Below, one piece after another: positions 8,951-64,000 of a stretch of 64,000 bases of DNA. Position 1 is the stretch's first letter. Each line of letters begins with the position of its first letter. Where the stretch lies: assembly GCA_026936335.1 (NCBI GenBank), contig JAPMXV010000050.1, positions 62,001-126,000 on the forward strand, read 5' to 3'. The translations under genes and the position numbers were made by a program. Origin of the DNA: Mantamonas sphyraenae STR306 (taxonomy: Eukaryota > Protista > CRuMs). Below the pieces are notes generated by a model, which searched no databases, was not told where the DNA came from, and worked only from the letters and a program-made list of their open reading frames with translations.

Positions 8951-11900
8951 ATGCAGCGTGCAAGATTGCTCGTGATTCTGCTTTGTGCCTGCCTTGTAAG
9001 TGTTTTTGTATGAATGGCGCGTGCTGTGCATGACCTGTGTGGCCGCACGTCCGTGCGTCGTGGCCGGTTTTGTGCTTGATGGAGAAAACGTTGCCCCATG
9101 CGGCCGCCGCTCGCGCACGGCGTACTACACGCGCCGCCGAGGACGAGGAGGGCACTCAGAGAGTGCTTGCGCTCTCCTTCTGCGTGCCTGCATGGTGTCG
9201 ACGGCGTGGCGCCGCACGCGCTGCGGCTGTCTAGCAGTTTTTGAGCGAAGGACGTTTGGGGTCGCCTTTTTTTTTCCGATGGATGGGCAAATTTTGAGCA
9301 CGGGCCTGTCAACAGCCGGAGACTGACAATGGAGACGCACACGGGGATGGGGACGCAGGCAATGGCTCATGTGGAGGTTTCCACAGGCGAGCCGCAGGCA
9401 ATGACAAATGCCATTGACGACAGCCAGCTGGAGGAGGCCCAGAAGCTGCTGAACCCTCTCGGGCAGGATGCGGAAGGCGAAAAAGCCTTTGTCTCCAGCT
9501 CAGACTCTGGCTCGGACGATGCGGAGCTCATCGAAGAGCCGGATACCACGGATGCGTCGCAAACGTCCGTGGCCGACGCAGAGGGCATGGAGGATGACCC
9601 TCTCGAGTCGGATCTGGAAGGTAAGCGGGCGAGAAAGGCGTGAGCAAGCGAAAAAAAAAACGCGGCGATGGCGAGAGGGAGAATTTTTCGCAGTGGAGGT
9701 TTTTCCGGCGCGGATCACTGACATGGGAGGTGGAACACCAGACTTCAACGAGAAGGAAGAAGCGCCTGAGGAGAACCGCGAGGCCGAGTCTGAAGACGAG
9801 GCTGAAGAAGCGTCCTCTGTGCTGCTGAGCGGCGCTCCGACACCGGAGGACGCGGACGACGTGGCCTCGGAAGACGAGACGCTGGAGGACGACGCCGAGC
9901 TTGCCGGCTCGGATGTCGAGGAGGAGGAAGAGGGTGTGGTGGAGAAGGACGAGGAGGACCTGGAACTGGAGAAGCAGGCCCAGGGCAAGCAAGAGGACAT
10001 GACTCTGCTGGAAGACCTCGATCTGGACACCGACCTCGCACGCCGCCTCAAGAAGGTGCGCTGTGGAAGCCGCTGCCGTTGCCGACGCACTCTGTTCAAG
10101 GTGCGCAAGGTGTACGTGAAGGAGCTGCACAGCCACAAGCGCAAGGTTGCACGTGCACGACGTGCACGCGCACGCCGTGCTCGTGCTGCGCGTAGCAAGA
10201 TGGCACGTCTGATCAAGCGCCTCAAGGTGCTGAAGGGACGTGCTCGCAGCCAGCTGCGTCGCTACCGCCGCACGCGCAACCGCAAGGCCAAGGCCACGTG
10301 GAAGCGCCGCTACGCCGCGACCATGAAGCGTGTGCGCCGTCTGCAGCGTGCTGTCAAGCTTCATCGCGCACGCGCAGCACGTGCTCGCGTGGCTCGCATG
10401 CGTGCGTCTGTCAACGCACGTATTGCACGCCTGCAGCTCGCACAGGCTCGCAAGTACAGCAAGGCTCGCCATGTGCTGATTCGCCGCCTGCGTGCCAAGC
10501 GCAACGGTGCCACACGACGTGCTCGCAACAAGGCTAGCCTGAAGCGCATCAAGCTGCGTGCACGCAAGATCCGTGCACTGACTCTGCGCGTCGCACGCTA
10601 CCGCCTCGCGCAGCGTCGTACTCGCAACGCAAAGCGCCGTGCCAGCATCGGCCGCAAGATGCGTGCCCTGCAGAAGCGCATTGCGCGTCTGTCGCGCCGC
10701 ACCAAGCGCCGTGCACGCAAGACCAAGCGACGCATTGCGCAGTGGGCTGTGTACCGACGCAAGCTGCGTGCGTACAAGAAGCGCATCGCAGCTCTGCGCC
10801 GCCGACGCAAGGCTCGCAAGGCTCTGCGCCGCATGATCGCCAAGCGCAACGCGTACCGCCGCAACTTTCTCAAAAAGGTTCGCCGTGCGCGTTCGCTGCG
10901 TCTGCGTAAGCGCTCGGGTGCCCTGCGCAAGCTGATGAAGAAGCTGCGTGCAAGCATCAAGCGCACACGCAACAAGCGCACGCGCCGTGCCCTGCGCCAG
11001 CGCATTGCACGCACGACGCGCAAGCTGCGCGCTCTGCGCCGCCGCTACTACCGTGCAGGCAAAGCCCTGTTCACCAAGCGCTACCGCCGCACACGACGTG
11101 CCTTGATCAAGAAGCGCAACGCGAACAAGCGTGCATACCGCCGCCGCTGTCGAAACAAGCGTGCTCGACGCAGCCGTGTGTGCCGCGCGATCCGCAAGCG
11201 TCTGTCGCGTGTGGCTCGCAGCCTGCGCTCGGCTCGCGCCAAGTACCTCAAGCGCATCGCTCGCAACACCAACACCAAGTACCTCTCGCGCGTGCGTGCT
11301 CTGGCTGCCAAGGTGGCCCACGCAAAGCGCGTGCTTCGCAAGCGCCTGTCAGCGCGCACACGTGCCGCTACCCTGCGCCGTCTGCGCCGTCTGCAAAAGT
11401 CGCTTGCTAGCATGAAGCGCACACGCGCACGCAAGCTGGCTTCTCTGCGCCGACGCGCAAAGGCCATCAAGAAGCGCCGCGCTCGCCGCCGTGCTGCTGC
11501 CAAGCGCCGAAAGCGCGTTGTGCGCAAGCGCCGCAACCGCAAGCTCAACCGTGCCGCAAAGTGCCATGCGCGCGCAAGGTCCTACTGCCGCAAGGCCAAG
11601 ATCTACCGCCGTCGCCGTGGCGCTGCCAACAAGCGCCGCGCAAAGGCCTTCAAGTCTCTTTGCGTGCGCCACTCCCGCGTCTGCCGCAAGCTCGGCAAGA
11701 AGCGCACCGTGCGCCGTGCCCTGGCCAAGCGTGCCAACAAGCGCTCTCGCCAGATCTACAAGCGCCTGTGCCCGCGCCTCTCCTTGCTGGACGAGGATGT
11801 CGTGTCGGACGCCGACTCGGACGACGACGAGCAGGACGCCGTCAGCGAGCGCTTCATGAGCTCCGCCAAGTTTGACGACTTTGCCGTCAAGATGGACGAC

Positions 11901-12003: not shown

Positions 12004-15000
12004 GTGTGGTTCGCCGCCGCCGACGCCGCCGTCGCACGACGCGCAAGTCGCGACGCCTGTTTGCGATTGCCAACCAGCGCCTGAACAAGATCCGCAACAC
12101 GCGTGCGCGCAACAACGCACGCAACTACTGCTACGCGCGCTTCCGCCGCAACGCCTCGCGCCTCGCACGCTGTGCGTCGCAGCGCCTGGCTCAGTGGAAC
12201 GGACGCAACAGGCGCACGCGCTACCTGCGTTTGGCCAACAACATGTTTGGCAAGATCCGCAACGCAGCAGCACGCAACCGTGCTCGCCGCGGCTGCAAGC
12301 GCCTTGTGCGCAAGCCGGCCAAGTACTACCTGTGCGCCAGCCGCGCCGCAGCCGCCGCCTTCAAGGTCGGCGCCAAGCAGAGCGGCCGCCAGCTCACCTG
12401 CCGATCGACGGGTGACCCGCACTACCGCTCCATGTACGGCCGTGGCTTCAACATCTACGGCAAGCAGGGCGCCATGACGCTGTACCAGTACCGCAACATC
12501 AAGGTGGTCACGTACGTCAAGTACGGCGCCCACTGGGGCAACCGTGGCCTCAACTCGCAGGTGTGGGTGTACAAGAACGGCCGCCGCGTGGCCCGCTACA
12601 ACGACCTGTGCCGCTTCAGTGGCAAGTCGGCGTACCGTCTGCGCCACAACAAGGCCAACTACTGGCTGCAGGCCAACGACGGACAGCGCATCCGCCTGAA
12701 CATGTCGTGCCATCGCGTGAGCAACCGTGGCAAGCGCCAGTTCTCGCGCGCCTACTACAACGTGTATGTGTATGCACGCGAGCTCGCCTCGCACCAAGCC
12801 AGTGGCATCTGCGTCAGCGGCCGCGGCAACCAGGTCAACTCCAACGTGTGGACCAACCGTGCCAACGCCCTGCTCAACAAGATGCCCGCCGCCAGCAAAC
12901 GCCGCGCACAGGCCGTCTGCCGCAAGCAGCGCACAAAGGTGCGCTACTACAACTGCGTCTACGACGTCGCCGCCGGCTTTGCCAAGCAGGCTGCCAAGCA
13001 CATCGCCGCTCGACGTGCTCGCCGCGCCAAGTACCTGCGCATGGCCGCCGCTCAGTTCCGCGCCATCACCAACGCCGCCAAGCGCCGACAGGCTACCACG
13101 TACTGCCGCGGCCGCTACGGCAAGAACGCACAACGCCTCTACCTGTGTGCTCGCCGCCGCCGTGTCGCCTTTAACGGCACATTCAAGGTCGGCGCCAAGG
13201 TTGGCGGCCGCCAGCTCACCTGCCGCTCGACGGGCGACCCGCACTACCGCAGCTTCTACGGCCGCGGCTTCAACGTCTACGGCAAACAGGGCGCACTCAC
13301 ACTGTACAAGTACCGCAACGTCAAGCTGGTCACGTACGTCAAGTACGGCGCAAGCTGGGGTAACCGCGGTCTGAACTCGCAGATCTGGCTGTACAAGAAC
13401 AACCGCCGTGTCGGTCTGTACAACGACCTGTGCCAGTTCCGCGGCAACAAGAAGTACCGCATGCACCGCAACCGCGCCAACTTCTGGATCCAGGCCAACG
13501 ACGGCCAGAAGATCCGCGTCAACTTTACGTGCCACCGCGTGGGCAACCGTGGCAAGCGCCACTTTTCGCGCGCTTACTACAACGTGTACGTGTACGCACG
13601 CGAGGTCGCCTCGCACATGGCCAGCGGCCTGTGTGTCAGTGGCCGCGGCAACCAGGTCAACGCAAGCGTGTGGTCCACCCGCGCCAACGCCCTGCTCAAG
13701 AAGATGCCGGGCAACCTGCGCAACCAGGCACGCCGCATCTGCCGCAAGCAGAGCACAAAGGTGCGCTACTACAACTGCGTCTACGACGTCGCCGCCGGCT
13801 TTGGCAAGCGCGCGCGCAAGCACATCGCTGCTCGCCGTGCGCGCAACAGCCGCTACTTTGCAAAGGGCAACGCCGCCTTGCGCAAGATCAGCAACGCTGC
13901 ACAGCGCCGCTCCAGCAAGAACTACTGTGTGCGCCGTTACCGCAAGCACGCAGTGCGCTTTTACCGCTGCGCTCGCAGCCAGCTGTCCAAGTGGAAGCGC
14001 ATCCAGAACACGATCAACCGCCCCGTGCGTGGCCTTGGCGCAAAGACGAACGGCCGCCAGCTCAACTGCCGATCGACGGGTGACCCGCACTACCGCAGCT
14101 TCTACGGCCGCGGTTTTGACATCTACGGCAAGCAGGGTGCCATGACTCTGTTCAAGCACCGCAACGTCAAGGTGGTCACGTACGTCAAGTACGGCGCCCA
14201 CTGGAGAAACCGTGGCCTCAACTCGCAGGTGTGGGTGTACAAGAACAACCGCCGCGTCGGCGTGTACAACGACCTGTGCCAGTTCCGCGGCAACAAGAAG
14301 TACCGCATGCACCGCAACCGCGCCAACTTCTGGATGACGGCCAACGACGGCCAGCGCATCCGTGTGCACTTTACGTGCCACCGCGTGAGCAACAAGGGCA
14401 AGCGCCACTTTTCGCGCGCTTACTACAACGTGTACGTGTATGCACGCGAGCTGGCGACGCACCAGTCGTCGGGTCTGTGTGTGAGCGGCCGCGGCAACCG
14501 TGCCAACAGCCGCGTGTGGGTCAACCGCGCCAACGCCGTCCTGCGCAAGCTCAACGCTGGCCAGAAGGCGCACGCACGTCGCATCTGCAGCAAGCAGCGC
14601 ACCAAGGTGCGCTACTACAACTGCATCTTTGACACTGCCGCTGGGTTTGGCAAACAGGCCCGCAAGCACATCAACGCTCGTCGTGCACGTCGCACCAAGT
14701 ACCTGCGCCTGGCGAACCAGACCTTTGCCAAGATCCACGGCGCCTCTCGCCGCCGCAACAGCCGCCGCCATTGCACACGCCGCTATCACGCACACGCTGT
14801 GCGTCTGTACAACTGTGCACGTGGCCAGTACGCACAGTACAAGCGCTCCAAGAACATGGCCCGCCTGTACAACCGTGCCAAGAAGGCCTTCCGCAGCATC
14901 GGCAACGGAGCACGTCGCGCAAACGCCAAGGCCTTCTGCAGCGCCAAGAAGCGCAGCGCCTCGGCTTACTACGCCTGCGCCGTCGCACGCCTGGCTTCGT

Positions 15001-18000: not shown

Positions 18001-21000
18001 GCCATGCCACAGGTGACCCGCACTACCGCAGCTTCTTTGGACGTCGCTTTGACATCTACAGCCGCGTCGGCAACTTCAACCTGTTCTCCTACAAGGACCT
18101 GAAGCTCGTTGCCTACGTCAAGTACGGCGCCTACTGGGCAAACCGTGGCCTCAACTCGCAGATCTGGCTCTACAAGGGAGGCCGCCGCATCGCGCGCTAC
18201 AACGACTTGTGCCAGTACAGCGGCCCCAGCGCCTACCGCATGCGCGGCAACCGCGCCAACTTCTGGGTTACCGCAAAGAACGGCCAGCGTGTGCGCATCT
18301 ATCTCACGTGCCATCGCGTCGGCAACCGTGGCCAGGCCCGCTACACGCGCGGCTACTACAACGCCTATGTGTACGCTCGCGAGATGGCCGCCCACACCGC
18401 CGGTGGCATCTGCGTCAGCAGCCGTGGCAACCGTGCCAACAGCCGCGTTTGGATCAACCGCGCAAACGCAGTCCTTCGCAAGCTCAACGCCGCGCAGAAG
18501 AAGCGTGCTCGCGCTGTCTGCCGCAAGCAGCGCACAAAGGCGCAGTTCTACGACTGCGTCTTTGACGTCGCCGCAGGCTTTGCCAAGCAGGCCGTCAACC
18601 ACGTCGCTCGCCGACGTGCACGCCGTGCCAAGTATCTTGGCCTCGCACGCAAGCAGTTCAACGCAATCCGTAGCCGCTCCAACCGCAGCCGCGCACGCAA
18701 GATCTGTCTCAAGCGCTACGGCAAGAAGCACGCCCAGCGCTACTACACCTGCGCCGCAGGCCAGCGCACACACTACGCACGCATGGCTCGTTACTACAGC
18801 CTCGCCGCAAAGAACCTGCGCTCCATCCGCAACAAGCGCCGCCGCGCCATTGCATACAAGTTCTGCGCCCAGGCAAAGGCCAACGCCTTCAAGTACTACC
18901 GTTGCGCTGTCAACCGCTTTGTCGCCTCCAAGCTTGCTCGCTCCCTGGGCAAGAGGCAGAGCGGCCGCCAGCTCACCTGCCGCGCCACGGGCGACCCGCA
19001 TTACCGCAGCTTCTACGGCCGCGGTTTGACATCTACGGCAAGCAGGGTGCCATGACTCTGTTCAAGCACCGCAACATCAAGCTGGTCACCTACGTCAAGT
19101 ACGGTGCCCACTGGGCCAACCGCGGCCTCAACTCCCAGGTCTGGCTGTACAAGAACAACCGCCGTGTCGGTCTGTACAACGACCTGTGCCAGTTCCGCGG
19201 CAACAAGAAGTACCGCATGCACCGCAACCGCGCCAACTTCTGGATCCAGGCCAACGATGGCCAGCGCATCCGTGTGTACTTTACGTGCCATCGCGTGAGC
19301 AACCGTGGCAAGCGCCACTTTTCGCGCGCTTACTACAACGTGTACGTGTACGCACGCGAGATGGCGACGCACCAGTCGTCCGGTATCTGCGTCAGCGGCC
19401 GCGGCAACCAGGTCAACTCGCGCGCGTGGGTCAACCGCGCCAACGCGATCCTGCGCAAGATGACACGTGAGCACCGCGCACGCGCCACCCGCACTTGCCG
19501 CAAGCAGCGCACCAAGATGCGCTACTACAACTGCATCTACGACGCCGCCAAGGGTTTCACAAACGAGGCCGCCAAGCACATCGCCGCACGTCGCGCACGC
19601 CGCCTGCGCCGCCTGCGCAAGGCCGCAAACTACCTGCGCGCCATCAAGCACAAGCGCACGCGCGTCCGCGCTCAGCGCTATTGCCGCAAGCGTTACGGCA
19701 AGCACGCCGAGCGCTACATGCTTTGCGCCAAGCGCAAGCTCGCCGCATACCGCCGTGACCTGCGCGCCAAGGCCCTGGCCCGACGCCGCAAGTTCCAGCG
19801 CTCTGCCGCCGGCTACAAGAAGTACCTGCGTGCTCAGCTCGCCAAGTGCCACCGCGAACAGCGCAAGCTCGCCGCCAAGCGCGCACGCATGGGCCCGCGC
19901 AAGTACTTTGTTCGCAACCGTCGCATCAGCCGCCGTTGCGCTCGCCTCCGCCACAACCTGCGTCGCGTCACCCTCTGTCTCGCGCACAGCCACATGGCCA
20001 AGAAGCAGCGCCTCGTCAACCGCAAGCGTGCTCTCGCCGCCAAGCTGCGTGCCATCCACGCACGCCTCGCCCGCCACAAGGGCAACGCCAAGCTTGTCCG
20101 CCGCCTCAATGCCCAACGCAAGCGCGTGGCACGCAGCCTGCGCTCCCTGGCACGCTCCATCAAGTGCTCTCTGCGCCGTGCCGTTCTGCGCAAGCAGTAC
20201 GCACGCAAGGCTTCCGCCTTGCATCGCCGCATCAAGCACGATGTCCGCTGGCTCAAGCGTCACCGTCGCCATCGTTCGCGCCGCGCAGTCGCTCGTCGCC
20301 TGCGCTCACGCCGCCGCTCTCTCGCCCTCCTCAAGCGCCGCCGCAAGGCTCACCTTGCACGCGCTTGCCGCAAGCTCAAGACCAAGCGCGCCGTCCCGCG
20401 ACGCCGCATCCAGGTCTGCTACGCCACGGGTGACCCGCACATGCGCACCTTTGATGGTGTCTCCTACGAGCAGCAACAGGTCGGCGAGTACACCCTCGCC
20501 GCCGATGCACAGCGTGGACTCGACGTCCAGGCTCGCTTCTGGAAGCGCAACATGGCCCAGCCCTACTCGCTTGTCGGCGCCTTTGCCCTCAAGTTTGGCA
20601 AGGTTCACGTCGCCACAACCAACAACGGCAAGGTGTACGTCAACAACCGCCTCCAGGGCGCCCTCTCTCGCTCCCCGCGCCGCACCGTGACCCGCCGCTA
20701 CGGCGACGTGGCCATCTCTGCAAAGGGCCAGCGCATCTACGTCTCTTGGTACTGCAACCGCAAGAACAAGAAGGCCTACTGCGCACGCGTCCTCCTGCAC
20801 CGCTGGGGCAAGCGCCAGAGCAAGACCAACGTCTTCAACCTCTACGTGTATGCCGACCGCGCCCACTTCAACCTCAACGGTCTGTGTGGCCACGCCAACG
20901 GCACACGCAAGGACGATCTCGTCGGCGGCAACGGCCACGTGTACCCCAACTGCGCCAAGAAGTGGTACCGCCGCTGCTACAACGACGACTTTGTCAACAC

Positions 21001-22407
21001 CTGGGCCACTGCGTCCAACACCTCCCTCTTTGCCCACAAGGTCCACTCGTGGAAGAAGTACAACTGGCAGCGCAAGATGCAGGCCGCTCCCCGGCCAAGA
21101 TCAAGTACCCCAGCGCCGCTTTCAAGAAGGCTGTCAAGCGCCGTTGCGCTCGCATCTTCAACCTCAACCTGCGTCTCGCCTGCCACGTCGACGCCATCGC
21201 CGGCTTCCGCCGCGCTGCCGCTCGCCGTGCCCTCGCACGTCTGCTCCGCATCAAGACAGCCGCAGGACGCGTCCACTGGCTCAAGACCTCGCGCTCTTTT
21301 GCACGTGCACGCAAGCCAAAGAGCTGCACCAAGGCCACCAAGGCCATGCGCAGCGTCATTGCCGCCGCGCGCCACTGGATCCGCCGCCTCAGCTTCAAGA
21401 AGCTCATCAAGGCTTACACTCGCAAGCTGTCCGCGTATGTCCGTGCCACCGCGCGCGCCCAGGCCAAGTGCACCATTGTCTTGCGTCGCCTCGCCGCCGC
21501 TCGCAACGCCTTCAAGTTCCTCGCCGCGCGCTGGAAGTCCGTGTATGCCTCCAACGACCACAAGGCCATGCGCAAGTGGATCAACCACTCGCGCACGACC
21601 ATTCGCCACTGGCGCATTCAGTGGTCCTACAAGAGGTCCTTCCTTGCCCAGGTCACCCGCTGGGCCAAGCAGTTTGCTTGGTGGAACAAGAACTCCCGCT
21701 GGGTGCGCTACAAGCCCTACCGCCCCGTCCAGATCTGCGCACGCCACAAGTTTATCCGCTCCAAGCTGGCTGCCACCTACGCCTCCATGAAGACCGTCCT
21801 GCAGGGCCCGCACAGCAAGCGCGTCAAGTGTGGCACCACCCGCAAGTACGCTCGCTTCCTCTTCCGCGCCTCCTACTACCTGTGGAACCAGCTCAACAAG
21901 CAGGCCAGCTCCATGGACTGCACACGCTGCTTCACCAAGCGCACAAAGTGGAACCAGAAGGGCGGCAAGCTGCTCAAGGATGACGACGCCGACCAGGACG
22001 TCGCCGACGCAGACTCCAACGCAAACGCTGATCTCAACAGCGCCGCCGAGGTTGCTGCTCGTAAGCGTTTGGCCAAGTCGTGCGACCACCACCTGTGGCG
22101 CCCCACGCTGCACTGCCGCAAGCGCATGTACCTCAGCGTCGCCACCGCGTGCTCGCGCGTCCTCTTCCAGCGCCGCTACGTCCAGTACGTCTACCGCCGC
22201 GCCTCCATCTTTGTCAAGCGCAACTACCGTGCGCTTGTCAAGCGCAACGGCAAGTATGTGGCCAACGAGCTCAGGAAGGCCGTCCACCGCCTCAAGTATC
22301 TGCGCGTCAGCTTCCGCAGCCTCAGCGTCACCATGCGCTGCGGCCGCTGCGGCAAGCACTACGCCAAGGCACAGAAGCGTGCCATCAAGAAGGCAGGCGG
22401 CAACTGA
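8951..22407 (+). CDS. Giant secreted Arg/Lys-rich polyprotein (~4,320 aa) with acidic pro-segments, 8 tandem GDPH/vWD-like repeats and one canonical vWD domain
   Basis: Exons 8951-8995 (MQRARLLVILLCACL), 9359-9620 and 9742-22407; introns 8996-9358 and 9621-9741 have GTAAG donors and ACTGAC branches. Single-base deletions near 19025 (TTT vs TTTT in the copy at ~14114) and 21090 (CCCC) join ORFs 9468..19055, 18902..21790 and 20746..22407. GDPH at 12411, 13233, 14079, 15063, 16047, 17028, 18012, 18990 and 20429; the last reads CYATGDPHMRTFDG...GLCGHANG...DDL. Confidence 0.85.
11964..12035 (+). repeat. (CGC/CGT)n tract encoding R14-VV-R8
   Basis: Read directly; in frame, immediately after DADAEA. 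Confidence 0.95.
12360..19760 (+). repeat. Eight tandem 822-984 bp coding repeats (vWD-like GDPH module plus Cys-pair basic helical linkers)
   Basis: GDPH spacings are 822, 846, 984, 984, 981, 984 and 978 nt. Copies 4-6 are near-identical at DNA level; copies 1 and 7 are diverged. Confidence 0.95.
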
Positions 22408-62110: not shown

Positions 62111-64000
62111 ATGCAAACCGCAACGTTGCTGCAACTTGTGGTTGTGCTGCTTGCGTGCAGCGTCGTGATGACGACGGCTGTGCCTGCAGCCAGTGTGTCG
62201 TCCACGGCTGTGGGCGCCACGCAAACACTGAAGCAAGGCATGGTCGCGAATGGCTCGCCGTCGGGAGCGACGGAAAGCGAAGCGGCCGCGGCCGATGTCG
62301 GCCTTGTGGATGTGCAAGACAACGAGCTGGACGAGCTCAACCAGGCCGCATCCGACCTGTCTGCACAGTCCAAGTTCTACCAGGACGACGAGCGCGACGA
62401 CCCATTTGCCTCGGACTTGTCTGGTGAGTGTGTGTGGGCAACGCGGCGGGCGGCAAACGCGGGCGCCGGCGAGAGGGGATTTGGCGTGGTGATTTGCAAC
62501 GGACCGTACGGCTGACACACATGGGCACAGACTTTGACGAGTACGAGGAAGAGGTGTCCGACCCGACGACCGAACAGGCCGAGGCTGCGCTGACATCTGC
62601 CGAGCCAGACAGCTCCATGGAGGTAAGCCTTTTCTTGAGGAAACTGCGCGTTTCCACCGTGCCCCTTTTTTTTCCGAGCGCCAAACGGCATTGTGCACGC
62701 AGCTTGCGGCGGGTACGCTTGTAGCAGCGACGCATGGACAGGAGCAATGTGTGCACACTGGATGTGTGCAGCGTGTGTGCAGGTCGTGCCGGCGTGCAAG
62801 TGAACGTGGGATGCGGCAGGGCGGAAGGGAAAGGCCAGCGGATGGCATCTGTTTTTTTTTCGCCAGCCCCAAATTTCAAGAGTCTTGTTTTCTGCTGTCG
62901 AGGCAATCGAAGCTGACACGGGAAAACGCAGGACGTGGACACGAGCGACGAAGAGGTGGAGGACGAGGCCGCGCGCAAGTTGCGCGACGAGTACCGCCAT
63001 TGTGACAGCAAGGGCAACCACCGAGCGTGTGTGTGTCTGCGCAAGATTCACACGCCCGTGCCTCGACCCGGAAAGCCCGCAAAGCCCCAGTGGGTGCTTG
63101 CGAGCAAGTATGCCAAGCGCGTGGTCAAGCGCACGGCCAGGAGCCAGAAGAAGCGTGCCAAGCGCGCTGTGAAGCGTCGTGTCAAGTAGGTTTTGCGGAT
63201 GGAGAATGCGGCGAGGAAGGAGATGGCAAGCAGGCACTCACACACACTCTCTCTCCCTCTGGTGTCTGTGCAGGAAAATGACGCTGCTGACAGCCGAGAT
63301 CAAGACTGTGCAGAAGACGCGTAAGTTGAGGCAGAAGAATTGTGCTCGTGGGGACTGCTGAAGAAGATGGAAGATGCACAGACACTCACACGACGAGGGA
63401 TGACGACGTGTCACAGTCAAGGTGTGGAAGAACAAGAGCAACCAGTACGGACGCACGCTGCGTCTGCAGCGTAGTCAGCGACGTGCGTCGCGCAAGATCT
63501 ACCAGAGACTGCGCAAGGACCGCAAGCACGCCAAGCTGGCGCGTGCTGAGCTGGGTCGCTTCCGTGCACTCACGCGAGCAATCAAGACGTCGCGTGCGCG
63601 ATATGTAAACGCACGTCGCCGCCTGCGTGCGCTGCGCCAGCGCGTGTCGCTGTACCGCCGCGCAAGCCGCTTTGGATGCAAGGTGCCCACGTCGGCAACC
63701 AAGGCCAAGGGAGCACGCCGTGCAGCGCTGTTGAAGCGCTTTGCACGCAAGTGCAAGCTTGTGATGCGACGCAAGAAGCGACGTGCGCGCCGACGCCTGC
63801 GCAGCCTGGCTCGAAAGCAGGTTGCGCGCTGCCGGCGCAGCCGAGCGTCGTGCCGACGCCACCGCGCGCTTGTGCGCAAGTACAGCCGCGCAGCGAGTGC
63901 GCAGCGCCGTGTGGCGCGCAAGTGGGGCCGCAAGAAGCAGTACAAGCGAGCTGCGGTGCATACGCGCCGTGCGGCCGCGCTGACGAAGCGCTTGAAGGGA
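62111..64000 (+). CDS. Secreted acidic-pro/Arg-Lys-rich protein, paralogue of the 8951 gene; 3'-partial
   Basis: Exons 62111-62423, 62531-62622, 62932-63185, 63274-63320 and 63417->64000, all frame-consistent. Signal peptide MQTATLLQLVVVLLACS, acidic region ending EDEAARKL, Cys cluster (HC...ACVCLRK), then very R/K-rich helical sequence. Confidence 0.85.

Follow-up and report, generated by a model that had tools for sequence, protein, structure and literature searches.

Why would two genes keep the same short peptide, split at the same codon by an intron, inside leader sequences that otherwise share almost nothing? The question is raised by a 64,000-nucleotide stretch of the genome of Mantamonas sphyraenae (the window; C50:62001-126000, 59.4% G+C), which carries two such genes on one contig, 52 kb apart: gene 1, from 8951 to ~22407 on the plus strand, and gene 2, which starts at 62111 on the plus strand (gene coordinates are those of the window). 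M. sphyraenae is a gliding, free-living marine flagellate and bacterivore of the CRuMs group; mantamonads stand near the base of Amorphea, and to our knowledge almost nothing is known of their secretory cargo. The account that we favor is that the two genes are colinear paralogues, that their intron-split motif is ancestral and has been kept by selection on the protein, and that it would act as a luminal docking site along the secretory route. Taken as a whole, we give this account a probability of roughly 60%.

We scanned the whole genome (25,061,354 bases in 78 contigs) and fetched 16 kb of it to follow gene 2 beyond the window edge. The published FALCON assembly has 25.06 Mb in 78 primary contigs with 59.19% G+C, and von Willebrand domains are unmentioned in the genome paper (PMC10492846). 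Protein searches were run exon by exon, or with the cDNA-derived protein P0002 of M. plastica; outside M. sphyraenae, the EukProt transcriptome of M. plastica is the sole source of relatives for the proteins studied here.

An earlier note on the window had placed phase-1 introns at 9621-9741 and 62424-62530, both splitting the same Asp codon of a shared motif, DDPxxSDLxDF. The coordinates prove exact, and both introns are GT..AG. In gene 1 the upstream exon ends GMEDDPLESDLE with the G at 9620, the intron reads gtaagc...cactgacatgggaggtggaacaccag, and the junction GAT CTG GAA G/gtaagc...caccag/AC TTC AAC GAG AAG GAA GAA (slashes mark the intron borders) rebuilds GAC (Asp). In gene 2 the acidic stretch of exon 1 ends ...ERDDPFASDLS, the intron reads gtgagt...ggctgacacacatgggcacag, and the junction GAC TTG TCT G/gtgagt...gcacag/AC TTT GAC GAG TAC GAG GAA likewise rebuilds GAC. 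Both frames run on only after splicing, because each intron, if retained, holds an in-frame stop (after GKRARKA in gene 1 and right after ...NGPYG in gene 2). Read across the junction, the motif is 16 residues long, D-[DN]-P-[LF]-x-S-D-L-x-D-F-[DN]-E-x-E-[ED]. Its first residue is number 94 of gene 1, where it reads DDPLESDLE-D-FNEKEE, and number 96 of gene 2, where it reads DDPFASDLS-D-FDEYEE.

Could chance alone produce such a match in a pair of acidic leaders of low complexity? Much of the leader would fit this explanation. Exon-by-exon Smith-Waterman comparison of the leader exons gives unremarkable scores (z = 2.4, 0.5 and 1.5), their DNA is not alike once the motif is set aside (z = 0.7 and 0.8), and the 6 of 9 identities of the upstream 9-mer, taken alone, are reached somewhere in the upstream exons by 7.8% of shuffles, which is not significant. 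Anchored on the intron, however, the flanks of the two genes are identical at 10 of 15 residues (11 of 16 if the split Asp is included); in 200,000 composition-matched shuffles the highest value was 8, and the mean 1.5. With strong anchored identity and weak whole-leader scores, the signal is the short junction motif and not the leader as a whole. The genome scan for further carriers that the earlier note had proposed, made here with the degenerate DNA pattern GAYGAYCCN7WSNGAYYTNNNNGGT, recovers both known sites and no others (exactly two matches in 25 Mb; none for the reversed control). A match that is confined to two paralogues and is also carried by a second species (see below) is hard to ascribe to chance.

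A relative of the chance explanation is that a recent, local gene-conversion patch copied the motif from one gene to the other, for which their spacing on a single contig would offer the opportunity. Here the codons are informative: among the ten identical residues, four are encoded by the same DNA and six differ synonymously (GAT/GAC, CCT/CCA, GAT/GAC, CTG/TTG, TTC/TTT and GAA/GAG), and no identical DNA extends across motif and intron. The synonymous differences make a recent conversion patch unlikely, and they argue for selection on the peptide. We regard chance and conversion, even together, as extremely improbable.

The same codons bear on a second alternative, in which exonic splicing enhancers on both sides of a branch-point-defined intron are what is selected and the amino acids follow passively. 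The placement of the conserved block speaks for it, since the block spans the junction (nine codons upstream, six downstream) while the remaining leader is without DNA or protein similarity, and the acceptors of these introns have no obvious polypyrimidine tract nearby, so exonic help would be plausible. Under this explanation, however, we would not expect the RNA to be less conserved than the peptide, as the six synonymous codons indicate, nor the peptide to be retained in M. plastica. We consider it decidedly unlikely as the source of the motif.

The evidence from M. plastica was obtained by word search, for which a gene 1 GDPH module (the repeated module described below) served as query; it returned one cluster of Trinity transcripts, and P0002 is a 3,119-residue member of that cluster. 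Its N-terminal part reads ...NGLVDVDDNDPQEAIQDIVEQDFKDDSADNPLESDLEDFDEQEDVEEV...EDAKVFRTKFRTCTSPNKKCKCLRSFRNKRR, and the motif, DNPLESDLEDFDEQED (with ...SDLEDFDEQED... across the junction site), is unbroken in the cDNA, which supports the spliced reading of genes 1 and 2. The upstream 9-mer of P0002 matches gene 1 at 8 of 9 positions and gene 2 at 7 of 9, and 7 or more matches occur in 3 of 2,000 shuffles. When the gene exons were aligned to P0002:1-135 with MAFFT, both halves of the motif came out in the wrong place. Elsewhere in the leader, GLVDVQDN of gene 2 (62300-62323) corresponds to GLVDVDDN in P0002 (shared form GLVDV[QD]DN). At its end, where the earlier note had seen A-R-[R/K]-L, that sequence holds for genes 1 and 2 (ARRL at 10038-10049 and ARKL) and fails in P0002, which has AKVF; what all three share is A-[RK]-x-[LF]-[RK]. 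The Cys region that follows, ...RTCTSPNKKCKCLR in P0002, keeps R-x-C-x-S...C-x-C-L-R. The 5′ gene models of genes 1 and 2 are supported in this way by sequence logic and by the cDNA of the orthologue.

Is P0002 the counterpart of gene 1 or of gene 2? P0002 and gene 2 have five modules each; in a tree of the modules, their first and last modules pair (support 100/99 and 99/98), the inner modules cluster within each species, and the C-terminal 832 residues of P0002 are 50% identical to gene 2 over 844 columns. By module order, tree and C-terminal identity, gene 2 and P0002 are orthologues. We found no orthologue of gene 1 in M. plastica. The comparison points to a duplication of genes 1 and 2, with motif and intron, that is older than the split between M. 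sphyraenae and M. plastica.

If the motif was inherited together with its intron, the introns themselves may retain some likeness. We find that the two align over ~70 nucleotides with a local score of 24.5, compared with a maximum of 16 for 19 other intron-like segments (a small control set) and 21 for 4,000 random genomic segments; z is 7.8. Neither intron recurs elsewhere in the genome. Rfam gave no match for either to a small nucleolar RNA (snoRNA) or other known RNA, which disposes of an intronic RNA of that kind. Other introns of these genes have runs of eight or nine T in their middle (9267-9275, 62666-62673 and 62852-62860); the first two stand between GCC/CCC and CCGA, CGCC follows the third, and similar intronic T runs occur in other paralogues.

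What, then, are the proteins that carry this motif? The earlier note held that the rest of the two genes is highly diverged, which does not survive once gene 2 is followed past 64000: the apparent divergence arose because the window edge cut gene 2. It continues for 8 kb beyond the window, to a whole protein of ~3,100 residues, and the GDPH/vWD modules that the note had suggested looking for there are present in five copies. Four of these five were matched in the genome search, with 38-60% identity to a gene 1 module, and the C-terminal domain of gene 1 (21514-22356) is 35-37% identical to that of gene 2 (E = 1e-21). Both proteins run in the same order: signal peptide, acidic low-complexity leader, a Cys cluster (C-x-S...C-x-C-x-R; CGSRCRCRR at 10062-10088 in gene 1), Arg/Lys-rich helices amounting to ~1,000 residues or more, GDPH modules and the C-terminal domain. 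The Cys cluster followed by Arg/Lys-rich sequence thus stands in both genes as first described. The last exon of gene 2 encodes a net charge of ~+938, five GDPH modules resembling von Willebrand factor D (VWD) domains and a C-terminal domain rich in Cys, His and Tyr. From its sequence, gene 2 is a full-length family member and a colinear paralogue of gene 1, not a diverged fragment.

Several comparisons connect the repeated modules to VWD domains. In an alignment of 26 modules three Cys are invariant, as are the four residues of GDPH and several others, and a profile of the modules hits FCGBP at its VWD domains (8rde, E = 6e-11). The profile was needed, as a PDB sequence search with a single module returned nothing. 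Pfam VWD (PF00094) reaches 25.3 bits on P0002 (cut-off 22.9) and has no match on the gene 1 protein or on a single module of M. sphyraenae. An AlphaFold2 model of a module (predicted local distance difference test, pLDDT, 83) is a β-sandwich followed by basic helices, and the Foldseek matches to it listed to rank 38 are all VWF, FCGBP, MUC2, MUC5AC, MUC5B and RGMB, except for a luciferase at rank 3; the matches to VWD proteins have probabilities of 0.92-1.00 and E values of ~1e-3 to 3e-2. As modeled, the repeated modules have the VWD β-sandwich fold.

In known systems the likeness is closest in the module itself. Like FCGBP, MUC2/MUC5AC and RGM (PMC8267560, PMC10880436), the Mantamonas modules start C-x3-GDPHY-x-[ST]F-x-G-x-F and end G-x-C...G, and like FCGBP the proteins have a signal peptide and tandem modules. 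Autocatalytic cleavage at the Asp-Pro bond of GDPH (PMC8267560, PMC10880436) is plausible, from the sequence, in the Mantamonas modules. Unlike in FCGBP and the mucins, the spacers are Arg/Lys-rich helices that bring the net charge to ~+800 to +1,000, and Pfam finds no C8, TIL or mucin (PTS) domains in the gene 1 protein or P0002. With these domains missing and basic helices following the sandwich, we reject a gel-forming mucin or VWF type of D assembly. A family that joins mucin-type, possibly self-cleaving VWD modules to such a charge is unlike the VWD proteins described so far. We know of no counterpart in FCGBP, mucin or RGM proteins of an acidic leader with DxPΦxSDLxDFxExE.

The family is larger than the two genes of the window. 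At least six genes in the genome encode GDPH modules (gene 1, gene 2, one on the minus strand of C50, and one each on C6, C43 and C59), and with P0002 colinear with gene 2 and carrying the motif unbroken, the suggestion of an old gene family is borne out. In all four further genes the first exon is hydrophobic and signal-like, and acidic sequence comes next. In the gene on C59 (minus strand, ~69260-69940) the acidic leader contains DNYDPLEYESAGEED; its DNYDPLEYES shares DPLE with the motif, has no intron beside it, and might be a degenerate copy. The motif therefore marks one subfamily (two of the six genes), not the whole family. Since four members have acidic leaders without it, secretion of the family does not in general require the motif.

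The third member of the family, on the minus strand of C50 (C50:42003-52560), is a neighbor of gene 1. In its leader, MKHGILILLLFLVGAASF is joined by a brief acidic part that four introns split; the 3,244-residue open frame that follows carries six GDPH motifs and matches the shared C-terminal domain weakly. The leader sequence STDVEDASSSDE resembles STDVEESSSMED of the C6 gene, with STDVE[DE]xSSS as a common block.

What might the motif do? The architecture invites a simple answer: the acidic leader could be a removable propiece that balances the charge of the basic body, with the motif as a latch onto the first basic helices. All six family genes have the order of signal peptide, acidic stretch and basic part, and A-[RK]-x-[LF]-[RK] followed by the Cys cluster is conserved in the three sequences compared. 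The same order is found in eosinophil proMBP and in the α-defensins, where propiece and mature protein come close to cancelling each other in charge. Quantitatively the Mantamonas proteins differ from these: the leaders carry net charges of -62 (gene 1) and -31 (gene 2), the bodies +788 (gene 1), +938 (gene 2) and +1037 (P0002). Because the leader compensates under 8% of the charge, it is not a bulk neutralizing propiece; nor is any cleavage site, dibasic or other, conserved at the leader end, where the three sequences read ARRL, ARKL and AKVF. We consider the propiece explanation unlikely. For the same boundary, a reading of A-R-[RK]-L as RxLR, PEXEL (RxLx[EQD]) or TEXEL (RRL) fails on AKVF in M. 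plastica, where R-x-L is not conserved; these are motifs of other lineages that lie nearer to the signal peptide.

We therefore return to the motif as a docking site. Its form suggests this reading: Pro, Ser, Leu, Phe and acidic residues hold fixed places in a small block set amid fast-evolving sequence, in a leader that is probably disordered around it. Because a related species retains it, the motif is probably a recognition signal, and the sorting or processing role that the earlier note had proposed for it would be a reasonable one. The steps would be as follows. Motif and intron would already have been present in the common ancestor of genes 1 and 2, before the Mantamonas species split, and selection on the protein would have preserved the motif as a short linear docking site within the disordered leader. 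Since a signal peptide precedes the motif, we expect its reader in the lumen; candidates would be sorting receptors, packaging factors and processing enzymes that deal with the giant-polycation subfamily. The genome encodes Vps10/sortilin loci and loci for convertases with a P-domain, which gives luminal sorting or processing a background plausibility only; nothing links either of them, or the pepsin-like protease upstream of gene 2, to the motif. Two P-domain (kexin/furin-type convertase) loci lie at C45:305721-305969 and C33:210730-210987, and proteins in which RR/KR pairs number in the hundreds would, unless protected, be clear targets for a convertase.

Short, N-terminal, luminal signals that combine acidic with a few fixed hydrophobic residues are known from other systems: the Asp/Leu/Glu/Leu motif at the N-terminus of POMC and the plant vacuolar signals of the NPIR type. 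With the Mantamonas motif these share no sequence match, and the analogy is functional only; D-N-P-L-E of M. plastica loosely resembles N-P-I-R. A more specific proposal is that D-x-P-Φ-x-S-D-L-x-D-F-x-E-x-E is a new luminal cargo signal that a receptor (e.g. Vps10/sortilin) reads, in this deep-branching eukaryote, to direct this one subclass of giant polycations to a dedicated secretory or phagosome-directed compartment, with the intron that splits the motif as a relic or a regulator of that module. In this full form we hold the proposal to be improbable.

A number of observations weigh against the docking-site account. The motif is known from three instances in total, none came to light when the loci of the other four paralogues were scanned with regular expressions, and it sits exactly over a splice junction, so that some splicing constraint may act on it besides selection on the peptide. 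The gene junctions rest on sequence logic and the cDNA of the M. plastica orthologue. Two non-homologous introns of genes 1 and 2 also score z = 4.7 against shuffles because of common features such as GCC-T8-9-CCGA, which weakens the case for intron homology; homology of the introns at 9621-9741 and 62424-62530 is likely from their alignment, not proven. Treated as a helix, the motif has a hydrophobic moment no higher than that of shuffles (p ~0.2), and we drop an amphipathic-helix reading on this ground. Word searches with the P0002 leader (within full-length candidates and stand-alone) came back blank, as did HMMER against 1.84 billion representatives. These blanks weigh little, because the searches did not return the protein's own cluster, the representative of which, P0001, is without the leader; the M. 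sphyraenae proteome is evidently absent from the protein collections searched. Two further searches were negative: a degenerate pattern for the cDNA form of the motif has 0 matches in JGI metagenome contigs, and Pfam gives nothing meaningful on the leader exons.

Nothing else in the leader is kept across two paralogues and two species, which makes the motif a concrete 16-residue handle for experiments on the secretion of so awkward a cargo. As for the proteins, giant VWD polycations may serve gliding adhesion or the binding of bacterial prey.

The exon and intron structure behind these comparisons is collected in Table 1. Intron 2 of gene 2 has no counterpart in gene 1.

Table 1. Exons, introns and motif of genes 1 and 2, in window coordinates
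Feature	Position	Strand	Description
Gene 1 exon 1	8951..8995	+	MQRARLLVILLCACL; signal peptide start, then donor gtaagt
Gene 1 intron 1	8996..9358	+	contains ATG 9329; exon 1 joins 9359 in phase
Gene 1 exon 2	9359..9620	+	AMAHVEV..., acidic leader, DDPLESDLE (9593-9619), first base of split Asp codon
Gene 1 intron 2	9621..9741	+	phase 1, 121 nucleotides, gtaagc...ctgac...caccag
Gene 1 long exon, start	9742..10088	+	AC plus FNEKEE (9744-9761), 94 further acidic-leader residues, A-R-R-L, Cys cluster
Gene 2 exon 1	62111..62423	+	signal-peptide-like start MQTATLLQLVVVLLACSVV, acidic leader; last base is G of split Asp codon
Gene 2 motif, upstream half DDPFASDLS	62396..62422	+	
Gene 2 intron 1	62424..62530	+	phase 1, 107 nucleotides, gtgagt...ctgac...cacag; position homologous to gene 1 9621-9741
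Gene 2 exon 2	62531..62622	+	AC completes Asp, FDEYEE (62533-62550), remaining acidic residues
Gene 2 intron 2	62623..62931	+	phase 0, 309 nucleotides, gtaagc...ctgac...cgcag; predicted from frame and P0002 spacing
Gene 2 exon 3	62932..63185	+	leader end, A-R-K-L (62971-62982), Cys cluster CDSKGNHRACVCLRK (63001-63045), first Lys/Arg-rich stretch
Gene 2 intron 3	63186..63273	+	gtaggt...gtgcag, phase 2; predicted from reading frame only
Gene 2 exon 4	63274..63320	+	(K)KMTLLTAEIKTVQKT; predicted; weakly similar to P0002 RKMRFTAFTNRMRAAL
Gene 2 intron 4	63321..63416	+	gtaagt...tcacag, phase 1; predicted from reading frame only
Gene 2 last exon	63417..71995	+	window-equivalent end; single open frame, ~2,860 residues

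Gene 1 shows two changes of frame further downstream. In its eighth GDPH module, at 19025-19027, ggTTTgac is one T short of ggTTTTgac, the form of an intact copy at 14114-14117; the loss shifts the frame to give GDPHYRSFYGRG and then LTSTASRVP before a stop, and the module carries on in another frame. This may be either a real frameshift or a long-read homopolymer error. The second change, at ~21000-21100, falls after the last module region and ahead of the C-terminal domain, where the open reading frames 18902-21790 and 20746-22407 overlap, and could be an intron or an indel.

Between the two genes, on the plus strand from 24744 to 57663, lie one or more separate giant genes of acidic, Glu/Lys-rich coiled-coil repeats, outside the polycation gene. 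Their open frames of 6,770, 1,479, 1,974 and 742 amino acids contain long internal duplications and repeated frame breaks. On the same strand, 3 kb upstream of gene 2, the open frame at 58151-59014 matches pepsin-like aspartyl proteases of eukaryotes (Pfam Asp, E = 7e-89).

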